The position numbers and the translations under genes were made by a program. Below are positions 1-64,000 of a stretch of DNA of 64,000 nt, piece after piece (the first letter of the stretch is position 1; each line of letters starts with the position of its first letter). Origin of the DNA: Auanema rhodensis (lineage: Eukaryota; Animalia; Nematoda); contig OZ059899.1 of the NCBI GenBank assembly GCA_964057225.1, positions 9,176,001 through 9,240,000 of the forward strand, written 5' to 3'. Under the pieces are notes generated by a model. That model was given only the letters and a program-made list of their open reading frames with translations. It had not been told where the DNA came from and did not search any database.

Positions 1-469
1 CATCACAATTGTCTTAGTTTTTTTTCTCATAAGAGTTTCTGAAATCTTAGGTGAACAAGGCCGTATATATTTTCCTGGAATTCGAAAGCATTTGGGATGG
101 AATTTAGAAAGAAAGGAACTAGTTTTTCCTACTTTAAAACAAACAATAAGAAATAAAATGAAAAAGATTGTTAGATATCCAATTTAAACTTATACATTTA
201 CTTCGATAAAGAGCCTATTAGATTGAAATTTTATGTCTTACAGTTCTCCAACAGAACAGACTGATCCTGATTTCTCTATGATTACATAAAACTCTCGTTT
301 GATATAAAAAAAGGAGAGGAATAACGTTTTCAGGTTGTCAAGGATATCGAATCTAGTGATATTGTAGAAAAATGTAATGTCAGCTCCATAGGTTTTCTCC
401 TAATTTCTCTCATCACAATTGTCTTAGTTTTTTTTTCTCATAAGAGTTTCTGAAATCTTAGTTAAACAA

Positions 470-542
470 GGCCGCGTGGCGCAATGGATAACGCGTCTGC
501 CTACGGAGCAGAAGATTGTAGGTTCGAATCCTGCCGTGGTCG
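470..542 (+). tRNA. tRNA-Arg(ACG), consensus intact copy
   Basis: GGCCGCG/CGTGGTC acceptor stem, TCTGC-CTACGGA-GCAGA anticodon arm, GTAGG-TTCGAAT-CCTGC T arm, 73 nt, no encoded CCA, followed by T7. Confidence 0.96.
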
Positions 543-546
543 TAAA

Positions 547-553
547 TTTTTTT
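547..553 (+). terminator. RNA Pol III oligo-T terminator (representative; a T5-T8 run follows every tRNA copy)
   Basis: T7 run starting 5 nt after the discriminator base. Confidence 0.85.
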
Positions 554-3128
554 CATTTAACTTGTCATTCATAAAAATCGAATTTATTTTTTTCAATGAT
601 TTTTTTTTGCAATGTGTCATAAGAATTACACAGTTGAACAAAACGTTTTTTAAGAATTTTCTTTGTTGTCAACATATATATTTTCCTGGAATTCGAAAGC
701 ATTTGGGATGGAAATTAGAAAGAAAAGAACTACTTTTTCCTACTTTAAAACAAACAATAAGAAATAAAATGAAAAAGATTGTTAGATATCCAATTTAAAC
801 TTATACATTTACTTCGATAAAGAGCCTATTAGATTGAAATTTTATGTCTTACAGTTCTCCAACAGAACAGACTGATCCTGATTTCTCTATGATTACATAA
901 AACTCCCGTTTGATATAAAAAAAGGAGAGGAATAACGTTTCCAGGATGTCAAGGATATCGAATCTAGTGATATTGTAGAAAAATGTAATGTCAGCTCCAT
1001 AGGTTTTCTCCTAATTTCTCTCATCACAATTGTCTTAGTTTTTTTTCTCATAAGAGTTTCTGAAATCTTAGGTGAACAAGGCCGTATAAAATTTCCTGGA
1101 ATTCGAAAGCATTTGGGATGGAAATTAGAAAGAAAAGAACTAGTTTTTCCTACTTTAAAACAAACAATAAGAAATAAAATGAAAAAGATTGTTAGATATC
1201 CAATTTAAACATATACATTAACTTCGATAAAGAGCGTATTAGATTGAAATTTTATGTCTTACAGTACTCCAACAGAACAGACTGATCTTGATTTCTCTAC
1301 AATTACATAAAACTCCCGTTTGATATAAAAAAAGGAGAGGAATAATGTTTTCAGGATGTCAAGGATATCGAATCTAGTGATATTGTAGAGAAATGTAATG
1401 TCAGCTCCATAGGTTTTCTCCTAATTTCTCTCATCACAATTGTCTTAGTTTTTTTCTCATAAGAGTTTCTGAAATCTTAGGTGAACAAGGCCGTATAAAA
1501 TTTCCTGGAATTCGAAAGCATTTGGGATGGAAATTAGAAAGAAAAGAACTAGTTTTTCCTACTTTAAAACAAACAATAAGAAATAAAATGAAAAAGATTG
1601 TCAGTTATCCAATTTAAACTTATACATTTACTTCGATAAAGAGCCTATTAGTTTGAAATTTCATGTCTTACAGTTCTCCAACAGAACAGACTGATCCTGA
1701 TTTTTCTACGATTACATAAAATTCTCGTTTGATATAAAAAAAGGAGAGGAATAACGTTTCCAGGATGTCAAGGATATCGAATCTAGTGATATTGTAGAGA
1801 AATGTAATGTCAGCTCTATAGGTTTTCTCCTAATTTCTCTCATCACAATTGTCTTAGTTTTTTTTCTCATAAGAGTTTCTGAAATCTTAGGTGAACAAGG
1901 CCGTATAAAATTTCCTGGAATTCGAAAGCATTTGGGATGGAATTTAGAAAGAAAAGAACTAGTTTTTCCTACTTTAAAACAAACAATAAGAAATAAAATG
2001 AAAAAGATTGTTAGATATCCAATTTAAAATTATACATTTACTTCGATAAAGAGCCTATTAGTTTGAAATTTTATGTCTTACAGTTCTCCAACAGAACAGA
2101 CTGATCCTGATTTTTCTACGATTACATAAAATTCTCGTTTGATATAAAAAAAGGAGAGGAATAACGATTCCAGGATGTCAAGAATATCGAATCTAGTGAT
2201 ATTGTAGAAAAATGTAATGTCAGCTCCATAGGTTTTCTCCTAATTTCTCTCATCACAATTGTCTTAGTTTTTTTTCTCATAAGAGTTTCTGAAATCTTAG
2301 GTGAACAAGGCCGTATAAAATTTCCTGGAATTCGAAAGCATTTGGGATGGAAATTAGAAAGAAAAGAACTAGTTTTTCCTACTTTAAAACAAACAATACG
2401 AAATAAAATGAAAAAGATTGTTAGATATCCAATTTAAACATATACATTAACTTCGATAAAGAGCCTATTAGATTGAAATTTTATGTCTTACAGTTCTCCA
2501 ACAGAACAGACTGATCCTGATTTTTCTACGATTACATAAAACTCTCGTTTGATATAAAAAAGTAGAGGAATAACGTTTCCAGGATGTCAAGGATATCGAA
2601 TCTAGTGATATTATAGAAAAATGTAATGTCAGCTTCATAGGTTTTCTCCTAATTTCTCTCATCACAATTGTCTTAGTTTTTTTTCTCATAAGAGTTTCTG
2701 AAATCTTAGGTGAACAAGGCCGTATATAATTTCCTGGAATTCGAAAGCATTTGGGATGGAATTTAGAAAGAAAGGAACTAGTTTTTCCTACTTTAAAACA
2801 AACAATAAGAAATAAAATGAAAAAGATGGTTAGATATCCAATTTAAACTTATACATTTACTTCGATAAAGAGCCTATTAGTTTGAAATTTTATGTCTTAC
2901 AGTTCTCCAACAGAACAGACTGATCCTGATTTTTCTACGATTACATAAAACTCTCGTTTGATATAAAAAAAGGAGAGGAATAACGTTTTCAGGTTGTCAA
3001 GGATATCGAATCTAGTGATATTGTAGAAAAATGTAATGTCAGCTCCATAGGTTTTCTCCTAATTTCTCTCATCACAATTGTCTTAGTTTTTTTTTCTCAT
3101 AAGAGTTTCTGAAATCTTAGTTAAACAA

Positions 3129-8314: not shown

Positions 8315-10494
8315 TAAATTTTTTTCATTTCACTTGTCATTCATAAAAATCGAATTTATCTTTTCCAACGATTATTTTTGCAATGTGTCATAAAAATTTC
8401 ACAGTTTAACAAAACGTTTTTTAAGAAGTTTTTTGTTGTCAACATATATATTTTGCTGGAATTCGAAAGCATTTGGGATAGAAATTAGAAAGAAAAGAAC
8501 AAGTTTTTCCTACTTTAAAACAAACAATACGAAATAAAATGAAAAAGATTGTTAGATATCCAATTTAAACTTATACATTTACTTCGATAAAGAGCCTGTT
8601 AGTTTGAAATTTTATGTCTTACAGTTCTCCAACAGAACAGACTGATCCTGATTTTTCTACGATTACATAAAACTCTCGTTTGATATAAAAAAAGGAGAGG
8701 AATAACGTTTCCAGGATGTCAAGGATATCGAATCTAGTGATATTGTAGAAAAATGTAATGTCAGCTCCATAGGTTTTCTCCTAATTTCTCTCATCACAAT
8801 TGTCTTAGTTTTTTTTCTCATAAGAGTTTCTGAAATCTTAGGTGAACAAGACCGTATATAATTTCCTGGAATTGGAAAGCATTTGGGATGGAATTTAGAA
8901 AGAAAAGAACTAGTTTTTCCTACTTTAAAACAAACAATAAGAAATAAAATGAAAAAGATTGTTAGATATCCAATTTAAACTTATACATTTACTTCGATAA
9001 AGAGCCTATTAGTTTGAAATTTTATGTCTTACAGTTCTCCAACAGAACAGACTGATCCTGATTTTTCTACGATTACATAAAACTCTCGTTTGATATAAAA
9101 AAAGGAGAGGAATAACGTTTCCAGGATGTCAAGGATATCGAATCTAGTGATATTGTAGAAAAATGTAATGTCAGCTCCATAGGTTTTCTCCTAATTTCTC
9201 TCATCACAATTGTCTTAGTTTTTTTTCTCATAAGAGTTTCTGAAATCTTAGGTGAACAAGGCCGTATATAATTTCCTGGAATTCGAAAGCATTTGGGATG
9301 GAATTTAGAAAGAAAGGAACTAGTTTTTCCTACTTTAAAACAAACAATAAGAAATAAAATGAAAAAGATTGTTAGATATCCAATTTAAACATATACATTT
9401 ACTTCGATAAAGAGCCTATTAGTTTGAAATTTTATGTCTTACAGTTCTCCAACAGAACAGACTGATCCTGATTTTTCTACGATTACATAAAATTCTCGTT
9501 TTATATAAAAAAAGGAGAGGAATAACGATTCCAGGATGTCAAGGATAACGAATCTAGTGATATTATAGAAAAATGTAATGTCAGCTCCATAGGTTTTCTC
9601 CTAATTTCTCTCATCACAATTGTCTTAGTTTTTTTTCTCATAAGAGTTTCTGAAATCTTAGGTGAACAAGGCCGTATATATTTTTTTCTGGAATTCGAAA
9701 GCATTTGGGATGGAAATTAGAAAGAAAAGAACTAGTTTTTCCTACTTTAAAACAAACAATAAGAAATAAAATAAAAAAGATTGTTAGATATCCAATTTAA
9801 ACTTATACATTTACTTCGATAAAGAGCCTATTAGTTTGAAATTTTATGTCTTACAGTTCTCCAACAGAACAGACTGATCCTGAATTCTCTATGATTATAT
9901 AAAACTCTCGTTTGATATAAAAAAAGAAGAGGAATAACGTTTCCAGGATGTCAATGATATCGAATCTAGTGATATTGTGAAAAAATGTAATGTCAGCTCC
10001 ATAGGTTTTCTCTTAATTTCTCTCATCACAATTGTCTTAGTTTTTTTTCTCATAAGAGTTTCTGAAATCTTAGGTGAACAAGGCCGTATATATTTTTTTC
10101 TGGAATTCGAAAGCATTTGGGATGGACATTAGAAGGAAAAGAACTAGTTTTTCCTACTTTAAAACAAACAATAAGAAATAAAATAAAAAAGATTGTTAGA
10201 TATCCAATTTAAACTTATACATTTACTTTGATAAAGAGCCTATTAGTTTCAAATTTTATGTCTTACAGTTCTCCAACAGAACAGACTGATCCTGATTTTT
10301 CTACGATTACATAAAACTCTCGTTTGATATAAAAAAAGCAGAGGAATAACGTTTCCAGGATGTCAAGGATATCGAATCTAGTGATATTGTAGAAAAATGT
10401 AATGTCAGCTCCATAGGTTTTCTCCTAATTTCTCTCATCACAATTGTCTTAGTTTTTTTTTCTCATAAGAGTTTCTGAAATCTTAGTTGAACAA

Positions 10495-10567
10495 GGCAGC
10501 GTGGCGCAATGGATAACGCGTCTGCCTACGGAGCAGAAGATTGTAGGTTCGAATCCAGCCGTGGTCG
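10495..10567 (+). tRNA. tRNA-Arg(ACG) variant C4A, T63A; probable pseudogene
   Basis: GGCAGCG…AATCCAGCC; acceptor and T-stem mismatches. Confidence 0.7.
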
Positions 10568-11514
10568 TAAATTTTTTTCATTTCACTTGTCATTTACAAA
10601 AATCGAATTTATCTTCTTCAACGATTATTTTTGCAATGTGTCATAAGAATTTCACAGTTGAACAAAACGTTTTTTAAGAAGTTTTTTTGTTGTCAACATA
10701 TATATTTTCCTGGAATTCGAAAGCATTTGGGATGGAAATTAGAAAGACAAGAACTAGTTTTTCCTACTTTAAAACAAACAATACGAAATAAAATGAAAAA
10801 GATTGTTAGATATCCAATTTAAACATATACATTAACTTCGATAAAGAGCCTATTAGATCGAAATTTTATGTCTTACAGTTCTCCAACAGAACAGACTGAT
10901 CCTGATTTTTCTACGATTACATAAAACTCTCGTTTGATATAAAAAAGGAGAGGAATAACGTTTCCAGGATGTCAAGGATATCGAATCTAGTGATATTGTA
11001 GAAAAATGTAATGTCAGCTCCATAGGTTTTCTCCTAATTTCTCTCATCACAATTGTCTTAGTTTTTTTTTCTCATAAGAGTTTCTGAAATCTTAGTTGAA
11101 CAAGGCTGTATATAATTTCCTGGAATTCGAAAGCATTTGGGATGGAATTTAGAAAGAAAGGAACTAGTTTTTCCTACTTTAAAACAAACAATAAGAAATA
11201 AAATGAAAAAGATTGTTAGATATCCAATTTAAACTTATACATTTACTTCGATAAAGAGCCTATTAGTTTGAAATTTTATGTCTTACAGTTCTCCAACAGA
11301 ACAGACTGATCCTGATTTTTCTACGATCACATAAAACTCTCGTTTGATATAAAAAAAGGAGAGGAATAACGTTTTCAGGATGTCAAGGATATCGAATCTA
11401 GTGATATTGTAAAAAAATGTAATGTCAGCTCCATAGGTTTTCTCCTAATTTCTCTCATCACAATTGTCTTAGTTTTTTTTTCTCATAAGAGTTTCTGAAA
11501 TCTTAGTTGAACAA

Positions 11515-11587
11515 GGCCGCGTGGCGCAATGGATAACGCGTCTGCCTACGGAGCAGAAGATTGTAGGTTCGAATCCTGCCGTGGTCG
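11515..11587 (+). tRNA. tRNA-Arg(ACG), consensus
   Basis: Identical to consensus. Confidence 0.95.
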
Positions 11588-12125
11588 TAAATTTTTCTCA
11601 TTTCACTTGTCATTCATAAAAATCGAATTTATTTTTTTCAATGATTTTTTTTTGCAATGTGTCATAAGAATTACACAGTTGAACAAAACGTTTTTTAAGA
11701 ATTTTCTTTGTTGTCAACATATATATTTTCCTGGAATTCGAAAGCATTTGGGATGGAAATTAGAAAGAAAAGAACTAGTTTTTCCTACTTTAAAACAAAC
11801 AATAAGAAATAAAATGAAAAAGATTGTTAGATATCCAATTTAAACTTATACATTTAGTTCGATAAAGAGCCTATTAGTTTGAAATTTTATGTCTTACAGT
11901 TCTCCAACAGAACAGACTGATCCTGATTTTTCTACGATTACATAAAATTCTCGTTTGATATAAAAAAAGGAGAGGAATAACGTTTCCAGGATGTCAAGGA
12001 TATCGAATCTAGTGATATTGTAGAAAAATGTAATGTCAGCTGCATAGGTTTTCTCCTAATTTCTCTCATCACAATAGTCTTAGTTTTTTTTTCTCATAAG
12101 AGTTTCTGAAATCTTAGTTGAACAA

Positions 12126-12198
12126 GGCAGCGTGGCGCAATGGATAACGCGTCTGCCTACGGAGCAGAAGATTGTAGGTTCGAATCCTGCCGTGGTCG
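12126..12198 (+). tRNA. tRNA-Arg(ACG) variant C4A
   Basis: GGCAGCG; one acceptor-stem mismatch. Confidence 0.8.
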
Positions 12199-12734
12199 TA
12201 ATTTTTTTTCATTTCACTTGTCATTCATAAAAATCGAATTTATCTTTTTCAACGATTATTTTTGCAATGTGTCATAAAAATTTCACAGTTTAACAAAACG
12301 TTTTTTAAGAAGTTTTTTTGTTGTCAACATATATATTTTGCTGGAATTCGAAAGCATTTGGGATAGAAATTAGAAAGAAAAGAACTAGTTTTTCCTACTT
12401 TAAAACAAACAATACGAAATAAAATGAAAAAGATTGTTAGATATCCAATTTAAACATATACATTAACTTCGATAAAGAGCCTATTAGATTGAAATTTTAT
12501 GTCTTACAGTTCTCCAACAGAACAGACTGATCCTGATTTTTCTACGATTCCATAAAACTCTCGTTTGATATAAAAAAAAGAGAGGAATAACGTTTTCAGG
12601 ATGTCAAGGATATCGAATCTAGTGATATTGTAGAAAAATGTAATGTCAGCTCCATAGGTTTTCTCCTAATTTCTCTCATCACAATTGTCTTAGTTTTTTT
12701 TCTCATAAGAGTTTCTGAAATCTTAGTTGAACAA

Positions 12735-12807
12735 GGCCGCGTGGCGCAATGGATAACGCGTCCGCCTACTTAGCAGAAGATTGTAGGTTCGAATCCTGCC
12801 GTGGTCG
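12735..12807 (+). tRNA. tRNA-Arg-derived gene with anticodon ACT (Ser); T29C, G36T, G37T; probable pseudogene
   Basis: Anticodon arm TCCGC-CTACTTA-GCAGA. Confidence 0.7.
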
Positions 12808-13345
12808 TAAATTTTTTTCATTTCACTTGTCATTCATAAAAATCGAATTTATTTTTTTCAATGGTTTTTTTTTGCAATGTGTCATAAGAATTACACAGTT
12901 GAACAAAACGTTTTTTAAGAATTTTCTTTGTTGTCAACATATATATTTTCCTGGTATTCGAAAGCATTTGGGATGGAAATTAGAAAGAAAAGAACTAGTT
13001 TTTCCTACTTTAAAACAAACAATAAGAAATAAAATGAAAAAGATTGTTAGATATCCAATTTAAACTTATACATTTACTTCGATAAAGAGCCTATTAGTTT
13101 GAAATTTTATGTCTTACAGTTCTCCAACAGAACAGACTGATCCTGATTTTTCTACGATTACATAAAATTCTCGTTTGATATAAAAAAAGGAGAGGAATAA
13201 CGTTTCCAGGATGTCAAGGATATCGAATCTAGTGATATTGTAGAAAAATGTAATGTCAGCTCCATAGGTTTTCTCCTAATTTCTCTCATCACAATTGTCT
13301 TAGTTTTTTTTTCTCATAAGAGTTTCTGAAATCTTAGTTGAACAA

Positions 13346-13418
13346 GGCCGCGTGGCGCAATGGATAACGCGTCTGCCTACGGAGCAGAAGATTGTAGGTT
13401 CGAATCCTGCCGTGGGCG
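13346..13418 (+). tRNA. tRNA-Arg(ACG) variant T71G
   Basis: 3' end CGTGGGCG; G2-G71 mismatch. Confidence 0.8.
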
Positions 13419-13955
13419 TAAATTTTTTTCATTTCACTTGTCATTCATAAAAATCGAATTTATTTTTTTCAATGATTTTTTTTTGCAATGTGTCATAAGA
13501 ATTACACAGTTGAACAAAACGTTTTTTAAGAATTTTATTTGTTGTCAACATATATATTTTCCTGGAATTCGAAAGCATTTGGGATAGAAATTAGAAAGAA
13601 AGGAACTAGTTTTTCCTACTTTAAAACAAACAATAAGAAATAAAATGAAAAAGATTGTTAGATATCCAATTTAAACATATACATTAACTTCGATAAAGAG
13701 CCTATTAGATTGAAATTTTATGTCTTACAGTTCTCCAACAGAACAGACTTTTCCTGATTTTTCTACGATTACATAAAACTCTCGTTTGATATGAAAAAAG
13801 GAGAGGAATAACGTTTCCAGGATGTCAAGGATATCGAATCTAGTGATATTATAGAAAAATGTAACGTCAGCTCCATAGGTTTTCTCCTAATTTCTCTCAT
13901 CACAATTGTCTTAGTTTTTTTTCTCATAAGAGTTTCTGAAATCTTAGGTGAACAA

Positions 13956-14028
13956 GGTCGCGTGGCGCAATGGATAACGCGTCTGCCTACGAAGCAGAAG
14001 ATTGTAGGTTCGAATCCAGCCGTGGTCG
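13956..14028 (+). tRNA. tRNA-Arg(ACG) variant C3T, G37A, T63A
   Basis: GGTCGCG…CTACGAA…CCAGC. Confidence 0.75.
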
Positions 14029-14564
14029 TAAATTTTTTTCATTTCACTTGTCATTTACAAAAATCGAATTTATCTTCTTCAACGATTATTTTTGCAATGT
14101 GTCATAAGAATTTCACAGTTGAACAAAACGTTTTTTAAGAAGTTTTTTTGTTGTCAACATATATATTTTGCTGGAATTCGAAAGCATTTGGGATGGAAAT
14201 TAGAAGAAAAAGAACTAGTTTTTCCTACTTTAAAACAAACAATACGAAATAAAATGAAAAAGATTGTTAGATATCCAATTTAAACTTATACATTTACTTC
14301 GATAAAGAGCCTATTAGATTGAAATTTTATGTCTTACAGTTCTCCAACAGAACAGACTGATCCTGATTTTTCTACGATTACATAAAACTCTCGTTTGATA
14401 TAAAAAAAGGAGAGGAATAACGTTTCCAGGATGTCAAGGATATCGAATCTAGTAATATTGTAGAAAAATGTAATGTCAGCTCCACAGGTTTTCTCCTAAT
14501 TTCTCTCATCACAATTGTCTTAGTTTTTTTTCTCATAAGAGTTTCTGAAATCTTAGGTGAACAA

Positions 14565-14637
14565 GGTCGCGTGGCGCAATGGATAACGCGTCTGCCTACG
14601 GAGCAGAAGATTGTAGGTTCGAATCCAGCCGTGGTCG
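14565..14637 (+). tRNA. tRNA-Arg(ACG) variant C3T, T63A
   Basis: GGTCGCG…CCAGC. Confidence 0.78.
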
Positions 14638-15173
14638 TAAATTTTTTTCATTTCAATTGTCATTTACAAAAATCGAATTTATCTTTTTCAACGATTATTT
14701 TTGCAATGTGTCATAAGAATTTCACAGTTGAACAAAACGTTTTTTAAGAAGTTTTTTTGTTGTTAACATATATATTTTGCTGGAATTCGAAAGCATTTGG
14801 GATGGAAATTAGAAAAAAAAGAACAAGTTTTTCCTACTTTAAAACAAACAATACGAAATAAAATGAAAAAGATTGTTAGATATCCAATTTAAACTTATAC
14901 ATTTACTTCGATAAAGAGCCTATTAGTTTGAAATTTTATGTCTTACAGTTCTCCAACAGAACAGACTGATCCTGATTTTTCTACGATTACATAAAACTCT
15001 CGTTTGATATAAAAAAAGGAGAGGAATAACGTTTCTAGGATGTCAAGGATATCGAATCTAGTGATATTGTAGAAAAATGTGATGTCAGCTCCATAGGTTT
15101 TCTCCTAATTTCTCTCATCACAATTGTCTTAGTTTTTTTTCTCATAAGAGTTTCGGATATCTTAGGTGAACAA

Positions 15174-15246
15174 GGTCGCGTGGCGCAATAGATAACGCGT
15201 CTGCCTACGGAGCAGAAGATTGTAGGTTCGAATCCAGCCGTGGTCG
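15174..15246 (+). pseudogene. tRNA-Arg(ACG) probable pseudogene C3T, G18A, T63A
   Basis: D loop AATAGATA loses invariant G18 (A box). Confidence 0.7.
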
Positions 15247-16193
15247 TAAATTTTTTTCATTTCACTTGTCATTTACAAAAATCGAATTTATCTTCTTCAA
15301 CGATTATTTTTGCAATGTGTCATAAGAATTTCACAGTTGAACAAAACGTTTTTTAAGAAGTTTTTTTGTTGTCAACATATATATTTTCCTGGAATTCGAA
15401 AGCATTTGGGATGGAAATTAGAAAGACAAGAACTAGTTTTTCCTACTTTAAAACAAACAATACGAAATAAAATGAAAAAGATTGTTAGATATCCAATTTA
15501 AACATATACATTAACTTCGATAAAGAGCCTATTAGATCGAAATTTTATGTCTTACAGTTCTCCAACAGAACAGACTGATCCTGATTTTTCTACGATTACA
15601 TAAAACTCTCGTTTGATATAAAAAAGGAGAGGAATAACGTTTCCAGGATGTCAAGGATATCGAATCTAGTGATATTGTAGAAAAATGTAATGTCAGCTCC
15701 ATAGGTTTTCTCCTAATTTCTCTCATCACAATTGTCTTAGTTTTTTTTTCTCATAAGAGTTTCTGAAATCTTAGTTGAACAAGGCTGTATATAATTTCCT
15801 GGAATTCGAAAGCATTTGGGATGGAATTTAGAAAGAAAGGAACTAGTTTTTCCTACTTTAAAACAAACAATAAGAAATAAAATGAAAAAGATTGTTAGAT
15901 ATCCAATTTAAACTTATACATTTACTTCGATAAAGAGCCTATTAGTTTGAAATTTTATGTCTTACAGTTCTCCAACAGAACAGACTGATCCTGATTTTTC
16001 TACGATCACATAAAACTCTCGTTTGATATAAAAAAAGGAGAGGAATAACGTTTTCAGGATGTCAAGGATATCGAATCTAGTGATATTGTAAAAAAATGTA
16101 ATGTCAGCTCCATAGGTTTTCTCCTAATTTCTCTCATCACAATTGTCTTAGTTTTTTTTTCTCATAAGAGTTTCTGAAATCTTAGTTGAACAA

Positions 16194-16266
16194 GGCCGCG
16201 TGGCGCAATGGATAACGCGTCTGCCTACGGAGCAGAAGATTGTAGGTTCGAATCCTGCCGTGGTCG
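16194..16266 (+). tRNA. tRNA-Arg(ACG), consensus
   Basis: Identical to consensus. Confidence 0.95.
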
Positions 16267-16804
16267 TAAATTTTTCTCATTTCACTTGTCATTCATAAAA
16301 ATCGAATTTATTTTTTTCAATGATTTTTTTTTGCAATGTGTCATAAGAATTACACAGTTGAACAAAACGTTTTTTAAGAATTTTCTTTGTTGTCAACATA
16401 TATATTTTCCTGGAATTCGAAAGCATTTGGGATGGAAATTAGAAAGAAAAGAACTAGTTTTTCCTACTTTAAAACAAACAATAAGAAATAAAATGAAAAA
16501 GATTGTTAGATATCCAATTTAAACTTATACATTTAGTTCGATAAAGAGCCTATTAGTTTGAAATTTTATGTCTTACAGTTCTCCAACAGAACAGACTGAT
16601 CCTGATTTTTCTACGATTACATAAAATTCTCGTTTGATATAAAAAAAGGAGAGGAATAACGTTTCCAGGATGTCAAGGATATCGAATCTAGTGATATTGT
16701 AGAAAAATGTAATGTCAGCTGCATAGGTTTTCTCCTAATTTCTCTCATCACAATAGTCTTAGTTTTTTTTTCTCATAAGAGTTTCTGAAATCTTAGTTGA
16801 ACAA

Positions 16805-16877
16805 GGCAGCGTGGCGCAATGGATAACGCGTCTGCCTACGGAGCAGAAGATTGTAGGTTCGAATCCTGCCGTGGTCG
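16805..16877 (+). tRNA. tRNA-Arg(ACG) variant C4A
   Basis: GGCAGCG. Confidence 0.8.
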
Positions 16878-17413
16878 TAAATTTTTTTCATTTCACTTGT
16901 CATTCATAAAAATCGAATTTATCTTTTTCAACGATTATTTTTGCAATGTGTCATAAAAATTTCACAGTTTAACAAAACGTTTTTTAAGAAGTTTTTTTGT
17001 TGTCAACATATATATTTTGCTGGAATTCGAAAGCATTTGGGATAGAAATTAGAAAGAAAAGAACTAGTTTTTCCTACTTTAAAACAAACAATACGAAATA
17101 AAATGAAAAAGATTGTTAGATATCCAATTTAAACATATACATTAACTTCGATAAAGAGCCTATTAGATTGAAATTTTATGTCTTACAGTTCTCCAACAGA
17201 ACAGACTGATCCTGATTTTTCTACGATTCCATAAAACTCTCGTTTGATATAAAAAAAAGAGAGGAATAACGTTTTCAGGATGTCAAGGATATCGAATCTA
17301 GTGATATTGTAGAAAAATGTAATGTCAGCTCCATAGGTTTTCTCCTAATTTCTCTCATCACAATTGTCTTAGTTTTTTTTCTCATAAGAGTTTCTGAAAT
17401 CTTAGTTGAACAA

Positions 17414-54769: not shown

Positions 54770-55304
54770 TAAATTTTTTTTATTTCACTTGTCATTCATA
54801 AAAATCGAATTTATTTTTTTCAATGATTTTTTTTGCAATGTGTCATAAGAATTACACAGTTGAACAAAACGTTTTTTAAGAATTTTCTTTGTTGTCAACA
54901 TATATATTTTCCTGGAATTCGAAAGCATTTGGGATGGAAATTAGAAAGAAAAGAACTAGTTTTTCCTACTTTAAAAGAAACAATAAGAAATAAAATGAAA
55001 AAGATTGTTAGATATCCAATTTAAACTTATACATTTACTTCGATAAACAGCCTATTAGATTGAAATTTTATGTCTTACAGTTCTCCAACAGAACAGACTG
55101 ATCCTGATTTCTCTATGATTACATAAAACTCCCGTTTGATATAAAAAAAGGAGAGGAATAACGTTTCCAGGATGTCAAGGATATCGAATCTAGTGATATT
55201 ATAGAGAAATGTAATGTCAGCTTCATAGCTTTTCTCTTGATTTCTCTCATCACAATTGTCTTAGTTTTTTTCTCATAAGAGTTTCTGAAATCTCAGTTAA
55301 ACAA

Positions 55305-55377
55305 GGCCGCGTGGCGCAATGGATAACGCGTCTGCCTACGGAGCAGAAGATTGTAGGTTCGAATCCTGCCGTGGTCG
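55305..55377 (+). tRNA. tRNA-Arg(ACG), consensus
   Basis: Identical to consensus. Confidence 0.95.
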
Positions 55378-57094
55378 TAAATTTTTTTTATTTCACTTGT
55401 CATTCATAAAAATCGAATTTATTTTTTTCAACGACTATTTTTGCAATGTGTCATAAGAATTTCACAGTTTAACAAAATGTTTTTTAAGAAGTTTTTTTGT
55501 TGTCAACATATATATTTTGCTGGAATTCGAAAGCACTTGGGATGGAAATTAGAAAGAAAAGAACTAGTTTTTCCTACTTTAAAACAAACAATAAGAAATA
55601 AAATGAAAAAGATTGTTAGATATCCAATTTAAACTTATACATTTACTTCGATAAAGAGCCTATTAGATTGAAATTTTATGTCTTACAGTTCTCCAACAGA
55701 ACAGACTGATCCTGATTTCTCTATGATTACATAAAACGATATCGAATCTAGTGATATTGTAGAGAAATGTAATGTCAGCTTCATAGCTTTTCTCTTGATT
55801 TCTCTAATCACAATTGTCTTAGTTTTTTTCTCATAAGAGTTTCTGAAATCTCAGTTAAACAAGGCCGTATATAATTTCCTGGAATTCGAAAGCACTTGGG
55901 ATGGAAATTAGAAAGAAAAGAACTAGTTTTTCCTACTTTAAAACAAACAATAAGAAATAAAATGAAAAAGATTGTTAGATATCCAATTTAAACTTATACA
56001 TTTTCTTCGATAAAGAGCCTATTAGATTGAAATTTTATGTCTTACAGTTCTCCAACAGAACAGACTGATCCTGATTTTTCTACGATTACATAAAACTCTC
56101 GTTTGATATAAAAAAAGGAGAGGAATAACGTTTCCAGGATGTCAAGGATATCGAATCTAGTGATATTGTAGAAAAATGTAATGTCAGCTCCATAGGTTTT
56201 CTCCTAACTTCTCTCATCACAATTGTTTTAGTTTTTTTTCTCATAAGAGTTTCTGAAATCTTAGGTGAACAAGGCCGTATATAATTTCCTGGAATTCGAA
56301 AGCATTTGGGATGGAATTTAGAAAAAAAAGAACTAGTTTTTCCTACTTTAAAACAAACAATAAGAAATAAAATGAAAAAGATTGTTAGATATCCAATTTA
56401 AACTTACACATTTACTTCGATAAAGAGCCTATTAGTTTGAAATTTTATGTCTTACAGTTCTCCAACAGAACAGACTGATCCTGATTTTTCTACGATTACA
56501 TAAAACTCTCGTTTGATATAAAAAAAGGAGAGGAATAACGTTTCCAGGATGTCAAGGATATCGAATCTAGTGATATTGTAGAAAAATGTAATGTCAGCTC
56601 CATAGGTTTTCTCCTAATTTCTCTCATCACAATTGTCTTAGTTTTTTTTTCTCATAAGAGTTTCTGAAATCTTAGGTGAACAAGGCCGTATATAATTTCC
56701 TGGAATTCGAAAGCATTTGGGATGGAATTTAGAAAAAAAAGAACTAGTTTTTCCTACTTTAAAACAAACAATAAGAAATAAAATGAAAAAGATTGTTAGA
56801 TATCCAATTTAAACTTACACATTTACTTCGATAAAGAGCCTATTAGTTTGAAATTTTATGTCTTACAGTTCTCCAACAGAACAGACTGATCCTGATTTTT
56901 CTACGATTACATAAAACTCTCGTTTGATATAAAAAAAGGAGAGGAATAACGTTTCCAGGATGTCAAGGATATCGAATCTAGTGATATTGTAGAAAAATGT
57001 AATGTCAGCTCCATAGGTTTTCTCCTAATTTCTCTCATCACAATTGTCTTAGTTTTTTTTTCTCATAAGAGTTTCTGAAATCTTAGTTGAACAA

Positions 57095-57167
57095 GGCCGC
57101 GTGGCGCAATGGATAACGCGTCGGCCTACGGAGCAGAAGATTGTAGGTTCGAATCCTGCCGTGGTCG
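57095..57167 (+). tRNA. tRNA-Arg(ACG) variant T29G
   Basis: As 49788. Confidence 0.8.
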
Positions 57168-58474
57168 TAAATTTTTTTTATTTCACTTGTCATTCATAAA
57201 AATCGAATTTATTTTTTTCAATGATTTTTTTTTGCAATGTGTCATAAGAATTACACAGTTGAACAAAACGTTTTTTAAGAATTTTCTTTGTTGTCAACAT
57301 ATATATTTTCCTGGAATTCGAAAGCATTTGGGATGGAAATTAGAAAGAAAAGAACTAGTTTTTCCTACTTTAAAACAAACAATAAGAAATAAAATGAAAA
57401 AGATTGTTAGATATCCAATTTAAACTTATACATTTACTTCGATAAAGAGCCTATTAGATTGAAATTTTATGTCTTACAGTTCTCCAACAGAACAGACTGA
57501 TCCTGATTTCTCTATGATTACATAAAACGATATCGAATCTAGTGATATTGTAGAGAAATGTAATGTCAGCTTCATAGTTTTTCCCTTGATTTCTCTCATC
57601 AGAATTGTCTTAGTTTTTTTCTCATAAGAGTTTCTGAAATCTCAGTTAAACAAGGCCGTATATAATTTCCTGGAATTCGAAAGCATTTGGGATGGAATTT
57701 AGAAAAAAAAGAACTAGTTTTTCCTACTTTAAAACAAACAATAAGAAATAAAATGAAAAAGATTGTTAGATATCCAATCTAAACTTATACATTTACTTCG
57801 ATAAAGAGCCTATTAGATTGAAATTTTATGTCTTACAGTTCTCCAACAGAACAGACTGATCCTGATTTTTCTACGATTACATAAAACTCTCGTTTGATAT
57901 AAAAAAAGGAGAGGAATAACGTTTCCAGGATGTCAAGGATATCGAATCTAGTGATATTGTAGAAAAATGTAATGTCAGCTCCATAGGTTTTCTCCTAACT
58001 TCTCTCATCACAATTGTTTTAGTTTTTTTTCTCATAAGAGTTTCTGAAATCTTAGGTGAACAAGGCCGTATATAATTTCCTGGAATTCGAAAGCATTTGG
58101 GATGGAATTTAGAAAAAAAAGAACTAGTTTTTCCTACTTTAAAACAAACAATAAGAAATAAAATGAAAAAGATTGTTAGATATCCAATTTAAACTTATAC
58201 ATTTACTTCGATAAAGAGCCTATTAGTTTGAAATTTTATGTCTTACAGTTCTCCAACAGAACAGACTGATCCTGATTTTTCTACGATTACATAAAACTCT
58301 CGTTTGATATAAAAAAAGGAGAGGAATAACGTTTCCAGGATGTCAAGGATATCGAATCTAGTGATATTGTAGAAAAATGTAATGTCAGCTCCATAGGTTT
58401 TCTCCTAATTTCTCTCATCACAATTGTCTTAGTTTTTTTTTCTCATAAGAGTTTCTGAAATCTTAGTTGAACAA

Positions 58475-58547
58475 GGCCGCGTGGCGCAATGGATAACGCG
58501 TCGGCCTACGGAGCAGAAGATTGTAGGTTCGAATCCTGCCGTGGTCG
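58475..58547 (+). tRNA. tRNA-Arg(ACG) variant T29G
   Basis: As 49788. Confidence 0.8.
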
Positions 58548-59495
58548 TAAATTTTTTTTATTTCACTTGTCATTCATAAAAATCGAATTTATTTTTTTCA
58601 ATGATTTTTTTTTGCAATGTGTCATAAGAATTACACAGTTGAACAAAACGTTTTTTAAGATTTTTCTTTGTTGTCAACATATATATTTTCCTGGAATTCG
58701 AAAGCATTTGGGATGGAATTTAGAAAAAAAAGAACTAGTTTTTCCTACTTTAAAACAAACAATAAGAAATAAAATGAAAAAGATTGTTAGATATCCAATT
58801 TAAACTTATACATTTACTTCGATAAAGAGCCTATTAGATTGAAATTTTATGTCTTACAGTTCTCCAACAGAACAGACTGATCCTGATTTTTCTACGATTA
58901 CATAAAACTCTCGTTTGATATAAAAAAAGGAGAGGAATAAAGTTTCCAGGATGTCAAGGATATCGAATCTAGTGATATTGTAGAAAAATGTAATGTCAGC
59001 TCCATAGGTTTTCTCCTAACTTCTCTCATCACAATTGTTTTAGTTTTTTTTCTCATAAGAGTTTCTGAAATTTTAGGCGAACAAGGCCGTATATAATTTC
59101 CTGGAATTCGAAAGCATTTGGGATGGAATTTAGAAAAAAAAGAACTAGTTTTTCCTACTTTAAAACAAACAATAAGAAATAAAATGAAAAAGATTGTTAG
59201 ATATCCAATTTAAACTTATACATTTACTTCGATAAAGAGCCTATTAGTTTGAAATTTTATGTCTTACAGTTCTCCAACAGAACAGACTGATCCTGATTTT
59301 TCTACGATTACATAAAACTCTCGTTTGATATAAAAAAAGGAGAGGAATAACGTTTCCAGGATGTCAAGGATATCGAATCTAGTGATATTGTAGAAAAATG
59401 TAATGTCAGCTCCATAGGTTTTCTCCTAATTTCTCTCATCACAATTGTCTTAGTTTTTTTTTCTCATAAGAGTTTCTGAAATCTTAGTTGAACAA

Positions 59496-59568
59496 GGCCG
59501 CGTGGCGCAATGGATAACGCGTCTGCCTACGGAGCAGAAGATTGTAGGTTCGAATCCTGCCGTGGTCG
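59496..59568 (+). tRNA. tRNA-Arg(ACG), consensus
   Basis: Identical to consensus. Confidence 0.95.
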
Positions 59569-60875
59569 TAAATTTTTTTTATTTCACTTGTCATTCATAA
59601 AAATCGAATTTATTTTTTTCAATGATTTTTTTTTGCAATGTTTCATAAGAATTACACAGTTGAACAAAACGTTTTTTAAGAATTTTCTTTGTTGTCAACA
59701 TATATATTTTCCTGGAATTCGAAAGCATTTGGGATGGAAATTAGAAAGAAAAGAACTAGTTTTTCCTACTTTAAAACAAACAATAAGAAATAAAATGAAA
59801 AAGATTGTTAGATATCCAATTTAAACTTATACATTTACTTCGATAAAGAGCCTATTAGATTGAAATTTTATGTCTTACAGTTCTCCAACAGAACAGACTG
59901 ATCCTGATTTCTCTATGATTACATAAAACGATATCGAATCTAGTGATATTGTAAAGAAATGTAATGTCAGCTTCATAGTTTTTCTCTTGATTTCTCTCAT
60001 CAGAATTGTCTTAGTTTTTTTCTCATAAGAGTTTCTGAAATCTCAGTTAAACAAGGCCGTATATAATTTCCTGGAATTCGAAAGCATTTGGGATGGAATT
60101 TAGAAAAAAAAGAACTAGTTTTTCCTACTTTAAAACAAACAATAAGAAATAAAATGAAAAAGATTGTTAGATATCCAATTTAAACTTATACATTTACTTC
60201 GATAAAGAGCCTATTAGATTGAAATTTTATGTCTTACAGTTCTCCAACAGAACAGACTGATCCTGATTTTTCTACGATTACATAAAACTCTCGTTTGATA
60301 TAAAAAAAGGAGAGGAATAACGTTTCCAGGATGTCAAGGATATCGAATCTAGTGATATTGTAGAAAAATGTAATGTCAGCTCCATAGGTTTTCTCCTAAC
60401 TTCTCTCATCACAATTGTTTTAGTTTTTTTTCTCATAAGAGTTTCTGAAATCTGAGGCGAACAAGGCCGTATATAATTTCCTGGAATTCGAAAGCATTTG
60501 GGATGGAATTTAGAAAAAAAAGAACTAGTTTTTCCTACTTTAAAACAAACAATAAGAAATAAAATGAAAAAGATTGTTAGATATCCAATTTAAACTTATA
60601 CATTTACTTCGATAAAGAGCCTATTAGTTTGAAATTTTATGTCTTACAGTTCTCCAACAGAACAGACTGATCCTGATTTTTCTACGATTACATAAAACTC
60701 TCGTTTGATATAAAAAAAGGAGAGGAATAACGTTTCCAGGATGTCAAGGATATCGAATCTAGTGATATTGTAGAAAAATGTAATGTCAGCTCCATAGGTT
60801 TTCTCCTAATTTCTCTCATCACAATTGTCTTAGTTTTTTTTTCTCATAAGAGTTTCTGAAATCTTAGTTGAACAA

Positions 60876-60948
60876 GGCCGCGTGGCGCAATGGATAACGC
60901 GTCTGCCTACGGAGCAGAAGATTGTAGGTTCGAATCCTGCCGTGGTCG
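60876..60948 (+). tRNA. tRNA-Arg(ACG), consensus
   Basis: Identical to consensus. Confidence 0.95.
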
Positions 60949-62254
60949 TAAATTTTTTTTATTTCACTTGTCATTCATAAAAATCGAATTTATTTTTTTC
61001 AATGATTTTTTTTTGCAATGTTTCATAAGAATTACACAGTTGAACAAAACGTTTTTTAAGAATTTTCTTTGTTGTCAACATATATATTTTCCTGGAATTC
61101 GAAAGCATTTGGGATGAAAATTAGAAAGAAAAGAACTAGTTTTTCCTACTTTAAAACAAACAATAAGAAATAAAATGAAAAAGATTGTTAGATATCCAAT
61201 TTAAACTTATACATTTACTTCGATAAAGAGCCTATTAGATTGAAATATTATGTCTTACAGTTCTCCAACAGAACAGACTGATCCTGATTTCTCTATGATT
61301 ACATAAAACAATATCGAATCTAGTGATATTGTAGAGAAATGTAATGTCAGCTTCATAGCTTTTCTCTTGATTTCTCTCATCACAATTGTCTTAGTTTTTT
61401 TCTCATAAGAGTTTCTGAAATCTCAGTTAAACAAGGCCGTATATAATTTCCTGGAATTCGAAAGCATTTGGGATGGAATTTAGAAAAAAAAGAACTAGTT
61501 TTTCCTACTTTAAAACAAACAATAAGAAATAAAATGAAAAAGATTGTTAGATATCCAATTTAAACTTATACATTTACTTCGATAAAGAGCCTATTAGATT
61601 GAAATTTTATGTCTTACAGTTCTCCAACAGAACAGACTGATCCTGATTTTTCTACGATTACATAAAACTCTCGTTTGATATAAAAAAAGGAGAGGAATAA
61701 CGTTTCCAGGATGTCAAGGATATCGAATCTAGTGATATTGTAGAAAAATGTAATGTCAGCTCCATAGGTTTTCTCCTAACTTCTCTCATCACAATTGTTT
61801 TAGTTTTTTTTCTCATAAGAGTTTCTGAAATCTTAGGCGAACAAGGCCGTATATAATTTCCTGGAATTCGAAAGCATTTGGGATGGAATTTAGAAAAAAA
61901 AGAACTAGTTTTTCCTACTTTAAAACAAACAATAAGAAATAAAATGAAAAAGATTGTTAGATATCCAATTTAAACTTATACATTTACTTCGATAAAGAGC
62001 CTATTAGTTTGAAATTTTATGTCTTACAGTTCTCCAACAGAACAGACTGATCCTGATTTTTCTACGATTACATAAAACTCTCGTTTGATATAAAAAAAGG
62101 AGAGGAATAACGTTTCCAGGATGTCAAGGATATCGAATCTAGTGATATTGTAGAAAAATGTAATGTCAGCTCCATAGGTTTTCTCCTAATTTCTCTCATC
62201 ACAATTGTCTTAGTTTTTTTCCTCATAAGAGTTTCTGAAATCTTAGTTGAACAA

Positions 62255-62327
62255 GGCCGCGTGGCGCAATGGATAACGCGTCTGCCTACGGAGCAGAAGA
62301 TTGTAGGTTCGAATCCTGCCGTGGTCG
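62255..62327 (+). tRNA. tRNA-Arg(ACG), consensus
   Basis: Identical to consensus. Confidence 0.95.
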
Positions 62328-63633
62328 TAAATTTTTTTTATTTCACTTGTCATTCATAAAAATCGAATTTATTTTTTTCAATGATTTTTTTTGCAATGTT
62401 TCATAAGAATTACACAGTTGAACAAAACGTTTTTTAAGAATTTTCTTTGTTGTCAACATATATATTTTCCTGGAATTCGAAAGCATTTGGGATGGAAATT
62501 AGAAAGAAAAGAACTAGTTTTTCCTACTTTAAAACAAACAATAAGAAATAAAATGAAAAAGATTGTTAGATATCCAATTTAAACTTATACATTTACTTCG
62601 ATAAAGAGCCTATTAGATTGAAATTTTATGTCTTACAGTTCTCCAACAGAACAGACTGATCCTGATTTCTCTATGATTACATAAAACAATATCGAATCTA
62701 GTGATATTGTAGAGAAATGTAATGTCAGCTTCATAGCTTTTCTCTTGATTTCTCTCATCACAATTGTCTTAGTTTTTTTCTCATAAGAGTTTCTGAAATC
62801 TCAGTTAAACAAGGCCGTATATAATTTCCTGGAATTCGAAAGCATTTGGGATGGAATTTAGAAAAAAAAGAACTAGTTTTTCCTACTTTAAAACAAACAA
62901 TAAGAAATAAAATGAAAAAGATTGTTAGATATCCAATTTAAACTTATACATTTACTTCGATAAAGAGCCTATTAGATTGAAATTTTATGTCTTACAGTTC
63001 TCCAACAGAACAGACTGATCTTGATTTTTGTACGATTACATAAAACTCTCGTTTGATATAAAAAAAGGAGAGGAATAACGTTTCCAGGATGTCAAGGATA
63101 TCGAATCTAGTGATATTGTAGAAAAATGTAATGTCAGCTCCATAGGTTTTCTCCTAACTTCTCTCATCACAATTGTTTTAGTTTTTTTTCTCATAAGAGT
63201 TTCTGAAATCTTAGGCGAACAAGGCCGTATATAATTTCCTGGAATTCGAAAGCATTTGGGATGGAATTTAGAAAAAAAAGAACTAGTTTTTCCTACTTTA
63301 AAACAAACAATAAGAAATAAAATGAAAAAGATTGTTAGATATCCAATTTAAACTTATACATTTACTTCGATAAAGAGCCTATTAGTTTGAAATTTTATGT
63401 CTTACAGTTCTCCAACAGAACAGACTGATCCTGATTTTTCTACGATTACATAAAACTCTCGTTTGATATAAAAAAAGGAGAGGAATAACGTTTCCAGGAT
63501 GTCAAGGATATCGAATCTAGTGATATTGTAGAAAAATGTAATGTCAGCTCCATAGGTTTTCTCCTAATTTCTCTCATCACAATTGTCTTAGTTTTTTTTT
63601 CTCATAAGAGTTTCTGAAATCTTAGTTGAACAA

Positions 63634-63706
63634 GGCCGCGTGGCGCAATGGATAACGCGTCTGCCTACGGAGCAGAAGATTGTAGGTTCGAATCCTGCCG
63701 TGGTCG
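63634..63706 (+). tRNA. tRNA-Arg(ACG), consensus
   Basis: Identical to consensus. Confidence 0.95.
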
Positions 63707-64000
63707 TAAATTTTTTTTATTTCACTTGTCATTCATAAAAATCGAATTTATTTTTTTCAATGATTTTTTTTTGCAATGTTTCATAAGAATTACACAGTTG
63801 AACAAAACGTTTTTTAAGAATTTTCTTTGTTGTCAACATATATATTTTCCTGGAATTCGAAAGCATTTGGGATGGAATTTAGAAAAAAAAGAACTAGTTT
63901 TTCCTACTTTAAAACAAACAATAAGAAATAAAATGAAAAAGATTGTTAGATATCCAATTTAAACTTATACATTTACTTCGATAAAGAGCCTATTAGTTTG

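Follow-up and report, generated by a model that had tools for sequence, protein, structure and literature searches.

Satellites derived from 5S rDNA are known. Satellites have also been described in reptiles that derive from SINEs, where a unit transcribed by Pol III gives rise to a tandem repeat whose gene function is then lost (PMC10702118). Long tandem arrays of tRNA genes occur in Entamoeba, in which nearly all tRNA genes are contained in 25 array types with up to five genes per unit and microsatellite spacers; these arrays account for a sizeable share of the genome and have been proposed to have a structural role (PMC2652664). A tandem tRNA-containing unit is also found at human 1q23.3, where copy number is unstable (9 to 43 copies) and a boundary function has been proposed; this unit is 7.3 kb long and GC-rich, contains several tRNAs as well as CTCF sites, and is retained in somatic cells (PMC4041453).

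Further tandem repeats of interest are found within the genome of the nematode Auanema rhodense itself. According to a preprint (bioRxiv 10.64898/2026.08.27.747507), each autosome carries a unique central repeat block that is eliminated, and these central tandem-repeat blocks are restricted to the germline, being discarded from the soma at about the 12-cell stage. The eliminated DNA is described there as transposon-rich, as bearing H3K9me3 in embryos, and as holding arrays of "several tRNA loci" along with 5S and U2 arrays, while the break sites are characterized by a 29-bp palindromic motif with a central GGC-N3-GCC and by telomere addition. The same preprint reports 19,554 annotated tRNAs for the species and long reads that map mostly uniquely within the repeat blocks, at about 29x; gene-rich regions reach about 236x.

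The locus considered here is a tandem array of a tRNA-Arg(ACG) gene and its flanks on C7. It differs from the Entamoeba arrays, and was not assigned to that type, in having a single isotype and a single gene per unit, with canonical copies dispersed elsewhere; in addition, most of its units are gene-less and it is probably germline-only. It is likewise not a SINE-derived satellite, as the tRNA part is identical to the real gene and the 410-bp spacer is absent outside C7 among the matches listed. Compared with other Pol III-derived satellites, the founding gene is preserved letter-for-letter in many units, and gene-bearing and gene-less forms coexist, joined by a single identifiable deletion. 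Its unit is AT-rich and 0.4 to 0.6 kb in length, in contrast to the human 1q23.3 repeat, and is present in about 3,000 copies. The closest likeness is to the A. rhodense central blocks, with which it shares the genome, chromosome specificity and a central position, and whose range of unit lengths (167 to 504 nt) includes its 410-bp unit (bioRxiv 10.64898/2026.08.27.747507). The available part of the preprint text contains no isotype, 199-bp deletion, higher-order repeats or contrast between tRNA and spacer. The array is already public in outline, and what is new is limited to the anatomy of the window and the conservation contrast between tRNA and spacer.

Units of the array and their tRNA genes

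The window, that is the whole stretch of DNA that was analysed (64,000 nucleotides), is occupied from position 1 to 64000 by 125 units arranged head-to-tail on the plus strand, with a G+C content of 30%. The units were delimited by a 19-nt anchor allowing up to three mismatches, which has 125 matches in the window; the anchor spacings are 607-611 bp for 66 units, 409-412 bp for 53 and 359 bp for the remaining five. ARAGORN detected 66 tRNAs, all on the plus strand. A 59th gene-less junction is located at the window start and represents the tail of a gene-less unit, so that the 66 tRNA-bearing and 59 tRNA-less monomers counted in the preliminary description are exact; the monomer decomposition and tRNA scan that it had proposed, run here as anchor spacing and ARAGORN, gave the same unit counts. 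Tandem Repeats Finder (TRF) recovered a 410-bp period with 96-98% matches.

The three unit types can be illustrated by single examples. A gene-bearing (T) unit of 611 bp at 72..682 (+) is composed of a spacer of about 397 bp, the 73-bp tRNA and a trailer of about 131 bp, and it is followed at 683..1092 (+) by a gene-less (s) unit of 410 bp that corresponds to a T unit minus 199 bp, with the junction GGCCG|TATA at 1084/1085. The 359-bp (d) unit at 55517..55875 (+) is an s unit with an extra 50-bp deletion at unit positions 222-271, and the same 50-bp deletion is present in the other four d units (57308, 59709, 61089 and 62467, all +). No RNA family besides tRNA reached the Rfam gathering score in the window. 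The only open reading frames of at least 90 amino acids are short (94-104 aa) and recur with the unit, those of 104 aa beginning within the tRNA; with respect to coding potential they were taken as by-products of the repeat.

The master tRNA sequence, represented at 470..542 (+), scores 58.3 bits against Rfam RF00005 and recurs unchanged in dispersed copies: exact contiguous halves of the master (26 nt at the 5' side and 47 nt at the 3' side) were matched on C1, at four single loci on C3, at two on C6, and at C7:12.74 Mb. Its cloverleaf is formed by standard pairs save for a 13-22 C.A, and the conserved bases of the D- and T-loops as well as the anticodon ACG are present. A T run resembling a Pol III terminator extends over 547..553 (+), beginning 4 nt past the tRNA 3' end, and a run of at least five T starting at this distance lies behind all 66 tRNAs of the window. 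Judged from its sequence, the master tRNA is a genuine gene of the functional type.

Every tRNA in the window passes the Rfam tRNA gathering score (41-58 bits), and by anticodon they comprise 60 ACG, one GCG and five called as "Ser ACT". The master sequence is exact in 14 of the 66, and 51 show a broken cloverleaf pair, an altered invariant base or an altered anticodon. Stem changes break the pair in 20 of 28 instances, and compensatory changes number zero. Variants specific to the array include C4>A, U71>G, U63>A, G53>A and the anticodon ACT. The five "Ser" calls are Arg tRNA bodies with G36>T; the copy at 12735..12807 (+), which in addition has U29>C and G37>T, is a member of a higher-order repeat that has copied it to four further positions (17414, 21484, 29631 and 34310, all +). 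Within the window the tRNA is as variable as its surroundings, with a diversity of 0.0356 versus 0.0333 in the flanks and 15 variable sites of 73 versus 108 of 536.

Gene-less units and higher-order repeats

The consensus alignment shows the s unit to be a T unit that lacks 199 bp, namely tRNA nucleotides 6-73 and the 131-bp trailer. One identical breakpoint is found in all 53 gene-less junctions of the window that were matched by the search pattern, and a single junction is common to the five d units as well. The gene-less units trace to one old deletion of single origin. No microhomology is seen at the GGCCG|TATA junction in the consensus alignment. Short direct repeats are located on both sides of the tRNA module, and a deletion mediated by them, as well as a construction of the unit from sub-repeats of about 200 bp, were rejected as the alignments were no better than those of shuffled sequence (z = 1.3 for the trailer against the 410-bp part, and z = -0.2 for the halves of the 410-bp part). 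Spacer polymorphisms are mostly common to T and s units, and their linkage to the presence or absence of the 199-bp module, with an r2 of 0.25-0.57 at distances of up to about 40 bp, has fallen to about 0 past 100-200 bp.

Units are further organized into local higher-order repeats. A domain of duplicated blocks of 4.1-9.4 kb extends over 10088..37967 (+), and these multi-unit blocks are 98.6-99.6% identical, compared with a diversity of about 3.3% (about 96.7% identity) between neighbouring units. Here a 4,679-bp repeat of seven T units and one s unit is found at 11117..15795 (+), with more full or partial copies starting at 15796, 19866, 28013 and 32692 (all +). Each position within this repeat has its own tRNA variant, the master occurring only at the first, so that six of the seven tRNAs are damaged in a fixed series. 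A second arrangement, a T-d-s repeat with a 1,380-bp period, occupies 54909..64000 (+), runs past the window end and gradually gives way to a T-d dimer of about 970 bp. As higher-order repeats copy damaged tRNAs along with intact ones, copy number in the window does not track the demand for tRNA, in agreement with what the preliminary description had proposed.

Extent of the family and conservation of its tRNA

The array continues past both window ends, as had been recognized from the window alone: sampling of 10 kb every 20 kb encountered the same units from about C7:9.111 Mb onwards, as far as at least 9.666 Mb. The left boundary falls within C7:9.1108-9.1153 Mb, and an outlier of five units is located at 8.997 Mb, which places the family between 8.997 Mb and at least 9.67 Mb of the 21.47-Mb C7, internal to the chromosome and near its centre. 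Flanks and interruptions of the array are transposon-rich. Genome-wide there are 2,957 anchors (about 2,960 units), all on C7, as are the spacers, among the matches listed, and 895 matches to the tRNA D-arm, of which about 36 are off-array; this corresponds to about 860 array tRNAs and about 1,970 gene-less junctions. From these motif counts, with sampling that reaches 9.67 Mb, the array measures some 1.4 Mb or more. In the assembly, the published AT-1 FISH probe has 115,040 exact matches at a spacing of 176 bp.

Two statements drawn from the window change in scope when the whole family is considered. The single orientation is correct within the window, but across the genome about 11% of anchors have the opposite orientation, including units in two of the sampled loci. 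That most tRNA-bearing units are damaged also applies to the window, but outside it 110 of 183 sampled tRNAs (60%) are exact master copies. The observation that nearly half of the units lack the gene is borne out and extended, as gene-less units outnumber gene units about 2.3:1 genome-wide and about 70% of all units have neither gene nor B box.

Outside the window the tRNA is the best conserved part of the unit. After masking of gaps and homopolymers, its divergence is 0.0076, compared with 0.016-0.025 in all the remaining parts of the unit, the trailer of the same module among them, and among 394 other 73-bp stretches of the unit in the outside samples none is as conserved. The tRNA is two to three times less diverged than the spacers in 24 of 25 sampled outside loci (sign test, p = 1.5e-6), and in these samples a variant in the tRNA is seen fewer times than one in the flanks (median count 1 versus 3, p = 0.006). 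The variants are random with respect to tRNA structure, with 43% "benign" versus 43% expected, and mutational events in the tRNA are only 20% below expectation. A low tRNA diversity that results from the lower copy number of the module (about 30% of units) was rejected because the trailer, which belongs to that module too, has diverged as much as the spacer, and GC-biased conversion was rejected because GC and AT sites of the tRNA are both less diverged. The clearly better conservation of the tRNA outside the window is not predicted by purely neutral satellite dynamics.

Explanations of the array and its germline context

Taken together, the window very probably represents the interior of a satellite derived from a tRNA-Arg gene, specific to the centre of C7 and probably of the eliminated type. 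At the start there would have been a genuine tRNA-Arg(ACG) gene, preceded by about 400 bp and followed by about 130 bp of flanking sequence; from this founding unit the 199-bp deletion (tRNA nucleotides 6-73 and the trailer) would have generated the 410-bp gene-less unit and a later 50-bp deletion the 359-bp unit. Unequal exchange and gene conversion, the exchange mechanism being our inference, may then have mixed the three unit types and amplified them as local higher-order repeats; since such processes amplify all unit types, copy number would be set by satellite dynamics and not by the need for tRNA. A satellite derived from a tRNA gene plus flanks was already suggested in the preliminary description, and the single deletion, the gene-less majority and the higher-order repeats support it. 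On account of its position, chromosome specificity and transposon-rich flanks, the block may be counted among the "autosomal central" repeat blocks of the preprint and would then be germline-restricted; we infer in the same way that the C7 tRNA-Arg block is itself eliminated. With somatic discard at about the 12-cell stage, any function would have to be exerted in the germline or the very early embryo.

Arrays that supply the germline are known from Xenopus, where oocyte-type 5S and tRNA repeats serve the oocyte. A working array that provides the germline, the oocyte and the earliest embryo with tRNA-Arg(ACG), with gene-less units as tolerated spacer, competes only partly with the satellite reading, and is unlikely. 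It accords with the many exact master copies outside the window and the lack of any other stretch equally conserved, with the reduced divergence of the tRNA in nearly all sampled loci and the rarity of its variants, and with the T-run terminator kept in every window copy; moreover, of nine retrotransposon junctions, five are located 6-72 bp upstream of a tRNA, which could reflect occupancy by germline Pol III factors. The preprint can be read both ways, as 5S and U2 arrays are also present in the eliminated DNA, but this DNA carries H3K9me3 in embryos (bioRxiv 10.64898/2026.08.27.747507). Against a working array are also the roughly 70% of units without the gene, the 51 damaged genes of 66 in the window with an anticodon mutant copied five times, and variants that are random to tRNA structure with events barely depleted. 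A role as a chromosome-identity element, in which the block would aid homologue recognition in meiosis as the sole large repeat peculiar to the centre of its chromosome, is quite improbable: the confinement of the family to C7 among the matches listed would suit it, yet junk DNA would be expected to turn over its unit types just as rapidly, and we know of no binding motif or binding protein for the C7 tRNA-Arg repeat. It is the preprint's own speculation for central blocks, its discussion proposing roles like those of pairing centres for chromosome-specific central repeats (bioRxiv 10.64898/2026.08.27.747507).

The array could also act structurally in all cells, as centromeric, chromosome-end or TFIIIC-boundary DNA, possibilities that the preliminary description had entertained. 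Rhabditid nematodes are holocentric, and Auanema would be too. Its size, AT-richness and higher-order repeats, and the B boxes of the T units, would be in keeping with such a role, but the array is internal on a 21.5-Mb contig, which speaks against the chromosome-end option, and the B box is missing from most units; a centromeric role is unlikely a priori if Auanema is holocentric and the block is discarded from the soma. As blocks of this kind are removed from somatic cells according to the preprint (bioRxiv 10.64898/2026.08.27.747507), a structural satellite of all cells is very improbable. Little probability also attaches to an assembly artefact, that is, a much smaller repeat that was for the most part inflated by the assembler. 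At the left array edge (9.111-9.152 Mb) there is a perfect 8,499-bp duplicate at an offset of 20,443 bp, and given this 100%-identical 8.5-kb copy some inflation there is possible; but the longest self-matches of the window differ by 0.4-1.4%, equivalent to a difference every 70-260 bp or so that HiFi reads can resolve, the unit types and variants follow ordered, non-identical patterns, and most long reads are reported in the preprint as unique within repeat blocks at about 29x (bioRxiv 10.64898/2026.08.27.747507).

Within the preferred reading of a tRNA gene-derived satellite, the conservation contrast, with new tRNA variants that appear at a nearly normal rate yet stay uncommon, leaves a modest chance that the array is not inert: either its germline genes are used, or intact, factor-bound Pol III genes amplify themselves, and the window would then be a local escape, a domain freed from the constraint on the tRNA. 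In the former version, which fits, the genes would, for example, provision oocytes and embryos ahead of the loss of the block at about the 12-cell stage; the latter fits as well and could operate, for example, through stalling of replication forks and unequal exchange. If true, self-amplification would also account for the seeding of arrays in eliminated DNA by tRNA, 5S and U2 genes. The damaged tRNA variants constitute built-in sequence tags, by which tRNA sequencing could reveal expression of the array. The locus makes readable the steps that lead from a gene array to a satellite, namely a founding gene, a single deletion and the renewed local amplification of copies already decayed. Being probably confined to the germline, the block also offers a natural test of whether DNA discarded from the soma is nothing but junk or has functions in the germline.

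Anatomy and extent of the array

The window carries 66 tRNA genes predicted by ARAGORN, all on the plus strand (anticodon ACG in 60 and GCG in one; the other five are called 'Ser ACT'). Their Rfam tRNA scores of 41-58 bits are above the gathering score in every case. A 19-nt unit anchor occurs 125 times on the plus strand and never on the minus strand of the window, and its spacing divides the units, all in plus orientation, into three classes: tRNA-bearing T units of 607-611 bp (n = 66), gene-less s units of 409-412 bp (n = 53) and gene-less d units of 359 bp (n = 5). The start of the window is the tail end of one more gene-less unit, so that the 66 tRNA-bearing and 59 tRNA-less monomers counted in the preliminary description are exact, and its observation of a tandem tRNA-Arg array is confirmed. 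Tandem Repeats Finder (TRF) recognizes a 410-bp period over the whole window with 96-98% matches, G+C content is flat at 30-32%, and no significant internal sub-repeat was found in the unit.

Alignment of the consensus sequences indicates that the s unit is a T unit lacking one 199-bp block, which consists of tRNA nucleotides 6-73 and the 131-bp trailer 3′ of the tRNA; the resulting junction joins GGCCG to TATA. The same breakpoint is found in all 53 junctions matched by the search pattern, both flanking junctions of the block are present in every one of the 66 T units, and no microhomology was found at the deletion junction. A second deletion of 50 bp (unit positions 222-271) is common to the five d units. 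In all 66 window copies a run of at least five T residues is located 4 nt beyond the 3′ end of the tRNA.

The array runs off the window, which occupies C7:9,176,001-9,240,000, on both sides. In 10-kb samples taken every 20 kb along contig C7 (21.47 Mb), units first appear at 9.116 Mb and continue, with interruptions in places, to 9.666 Mb or beyond, and a few of those at 9.587 and 9.666 Mb are inverted; pattern matches place the left edge at C7:9.1108-9.1153 Mb. Genome-wide there are 2,957 unit anchors (11% on the other strand), 895 matches to the tRNA D-arm, about 36 of them outside the array, and about 1,970 gene-less junctions, and among the matches listed those to anchor and spacer are all on C7. 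These counts therefore correspond to approximately 860 gene units versus 2,000-2,100 gene-less units, which together amount to about 1.4 Mb when transposon insertions are left aside. The window, at 53% T units, sits in the gene-rich left part of the array.

Two further features were noted at or near the left edge. The segments C7:9,116,001-9,124,499 and C7:9,136,444-9,144,942 (sampled loci L010:1-8499 and L011:444-8942) are 100.000% identical over 8,499 bp; they are offset by 20,443 bp, and pattern matches agree across the full 20.4 kb. The pair is the product either of very recent segmental duplication or of false duplication in the assembly, and no comparable duplicate was found inside the window. 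About 110 kb to the left of the array, five more 608-bp gene units of this family form an outlying cluster (C7:8,997,105-8,999,758), which is marked by a diagnostic A>G change in the anchor and could be a relic or a progenitor.

Origin and amplification of the units

The master tRNA, the commonest sequence, folds into a clean cloverleaf with a single C.A pair at 13-22. Exact, contiguous matches to its 26-nt 5′ and 47-nt 3′ parts occur at single loci on C1, C3, C6 and C7 (12.74 Mb), as well as in two small arrays of the same tRNA-Arg(ACG): one on the minus strand at C3:17,684,701-17,720,625 (about 26 copies, spaced roughly 0.9-2.1 kb) and one on the plus strand at C6:15,373,638-15,376,057 (five copies, spaced 0.45-0.8 kb). 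Because these exact halves lie at ordinary loci elsewhere, the sequence comparison identifies the species' ordinary tRNA-Arg(ACG) gene as the founder that seeded the C7 array, and a SINE or pseudogene founder is ruled out. The flanks of the C3 and C6 arrays differ from those of the C7 array, with T rather than A at position -1.

Self-comparison revealed 4.1-9.4-kb blocks with 98.6-99.6% identity to one another, whereas neighbouring units differ by about 3.3%. The region from about 10 to 38 kb of the window is made of a 4,679-bp repeat that combines seven T units with a single s unit, and in this repeat each of the seven T positions bears a distinct tRNA variant and only the first bears the master. 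From about 55 kb a different repeat is found, T-d-s (1,380 bp), and just outside the window end it passes into a T-d dimer with a length of about 970 bp. Damaged and intact genes are thus amplified alike.

The majority of spacer polymorphisms are common to T and s units. Linkage between spacer variants and presence of the 199-bp module decays quickly: on the upstream side r2 is 0.25 at a distance of 13 bp and about 0 past roughly 100 bp, and on the downstream side it is 0.57 at 40 bp and about 0 past roughly 200 bp; no p-value is attached to these figures, since units block-copied by higher-order repeats are not independent samples. This pattern of decay would result from a single old deletion and much subsequent exchange or conversion within the array.

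Damage to the tRNA genes and restraint on its spread

The preliminary claim that most of the genes are damaged is right for the window: 51 of the 66 tRNAs have at least one broken stem pair, an altered invariant base (G18, G19 or G53) or an altered anticodon, 14 are master copies and one has a harmless change alone. Here diversity is equal in tRNA and flanks (π 0.0356 versus 0.0333; 15/73 versus 108/536 variable sites). When the T units of the window are pooled with those from 25 other sampled places (249 units in all), a pair is broken by 20 of the 28 distinct stem changes, and no compensatory double changes were found in the stems.

The window is atypical of the array, however. In the samples from outside it, 110 of 183 tRNAs (60%) match the master exactly; for the 394 other 73-bp stretches examined in the unit, the share of exact consensus copies is at most 50%, with a median of 31%. 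With gap and homopolymer columns removed, divergence from the consensus is 0.0076 for the tRNA, compared with 0.018-0.022 for the upstream spacer and 0.016-0.025 for the trailer of the same module. At 24 of the 25 loci the tRNA is the less diverged of the two (sign test, p = 1.5e-6), although two of these loci overlap the perfect duplicate and 23/24 is the safer count. The deficit is present at GC and AT sites alike.

The distinct tRNA changes number 42 versus the 52.8 predicted from the flank mutation spectrum, only about 20% fewer, and they are random as to structure (43% 'benign' versus 43% expected), yet tRNA variants are rarer than flank variants (median count 1 versus 3, p = 0.006). Changes thus arise in nearly the expected number, and over most of the array something holds back their spread; this restraint is missing at about 8-48 kb of the window. 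It could arise because damaged copies are weakly selected against, because the canonical genes convert array copies, or because intact genes are preferentially amplified.

One window variant has an ACT anticodon on an Arg-tRNA body (12735-12807, with copies at 17414, 21484, 29631 and 34310) and occupies the third position of the 4,679-bp repeat. A tRNA of this kind, if it were expressed and carried arginine, would misread AGU codons for serine. That the variant has been amplified five-fold suggests a silent or non-functional gene.

Retrotransposon insertions and the probable germline-restricted context

LTR retrotransposons of two kinds, Pao/BEL-type and Ty3-type, interrupt the array outside the window. 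The Pao/BEL-type element (about 9.4 kb; about a dozen LTR ends genome-wide) encodes at L014:17-5962 (plus strand) a 1,981-aa ORF with Pao peptidase, integrase zinc, and phlebovirus G2-like fusion and C-terminal domains. Two Ty3-type copies, L022:1062-6139 and L018:2692-8825, are separated by 80 kb within the array and share 99.5% identity; their upstream ORF weakly matches viral fusion glycoproteins (Monjiviricetes fusion, herpes gB ectodomain). Nematode LTR elements with envelope genes of these kinds are known.

In unit coordinates, where the tRNA starts at 398, one Pao-like family is inserted twice at position 326, 72 bp upstream of the tRNA (L014:1-7160 and L019:1-4136); these are independent events, as the orientations are opposite and the LTRs 96% identical. 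Position 341, 57 bp upstream, was also hit twice, by a full element (L028:5338-10000) and a 1,275-bp solo LTR (L029:739-2013) with the target duplication CTCA, and position 392, 6 bp before the tRNA, once (L017:1-3385); the other insertion points are 267, 178, 66 and 61. In this small sample, five of nine junctions lie within 72 bp upstream of the tRNA in T units, a clustering that may reflect Pol III-directed integration and hence factor occupancy of the array genes in the germline.

The DNA bordering the array on its left (L009:2463-4224 and 6703-8464; C7:~9.098-9.104 Mb) holds a tandem duplicate, repeated with a period of 4,240 bp, that carries an integrase and chromodomain fragment. Two adjoining ORFs at L035:719-3228 (C7:~9.077-9.079 Mb) match protein-primed family-B DNA polymerase (PF03175) and probably represent a broken Polinton/Maverick-type element.

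According to a preprint on DNA eliminated from somatic cells of Auanema rhodense (bioRxiv 10.64898/2026.08.27.747507), every autosome has an eliminated central block of chromosome-unique repeats with units of 167-504 nt; the eliminated DNA holds 5S rRNA, 'several tRNA loci' and U2 arrays, and 19,554 tRNAs are annotated. Its 28-nt AT-1 FISH probe has exactly 115,040 occurrences in the assembly, at 176-bp spacing from the start of C1, which supports Auanema rhodense as the species. In outline the system has therefore already been made public; the window anatomy and the tRNA-versus-spacer contrast are the details added here. The C7 array resembles the central blocks described there in being confined to C7, mid-contig, built of a 410-bp unit and flanked by transposon-rich DNA. 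The earlier proposals of a centromere, chromosome end or boundary are unsupported, and the reading of a tRNA gene array behaving as a satellite holds, although it lacked the key context: the tRNA-Arg array is probably a block confined to the germline and removed by the programmed DNA elimination of this nematode.
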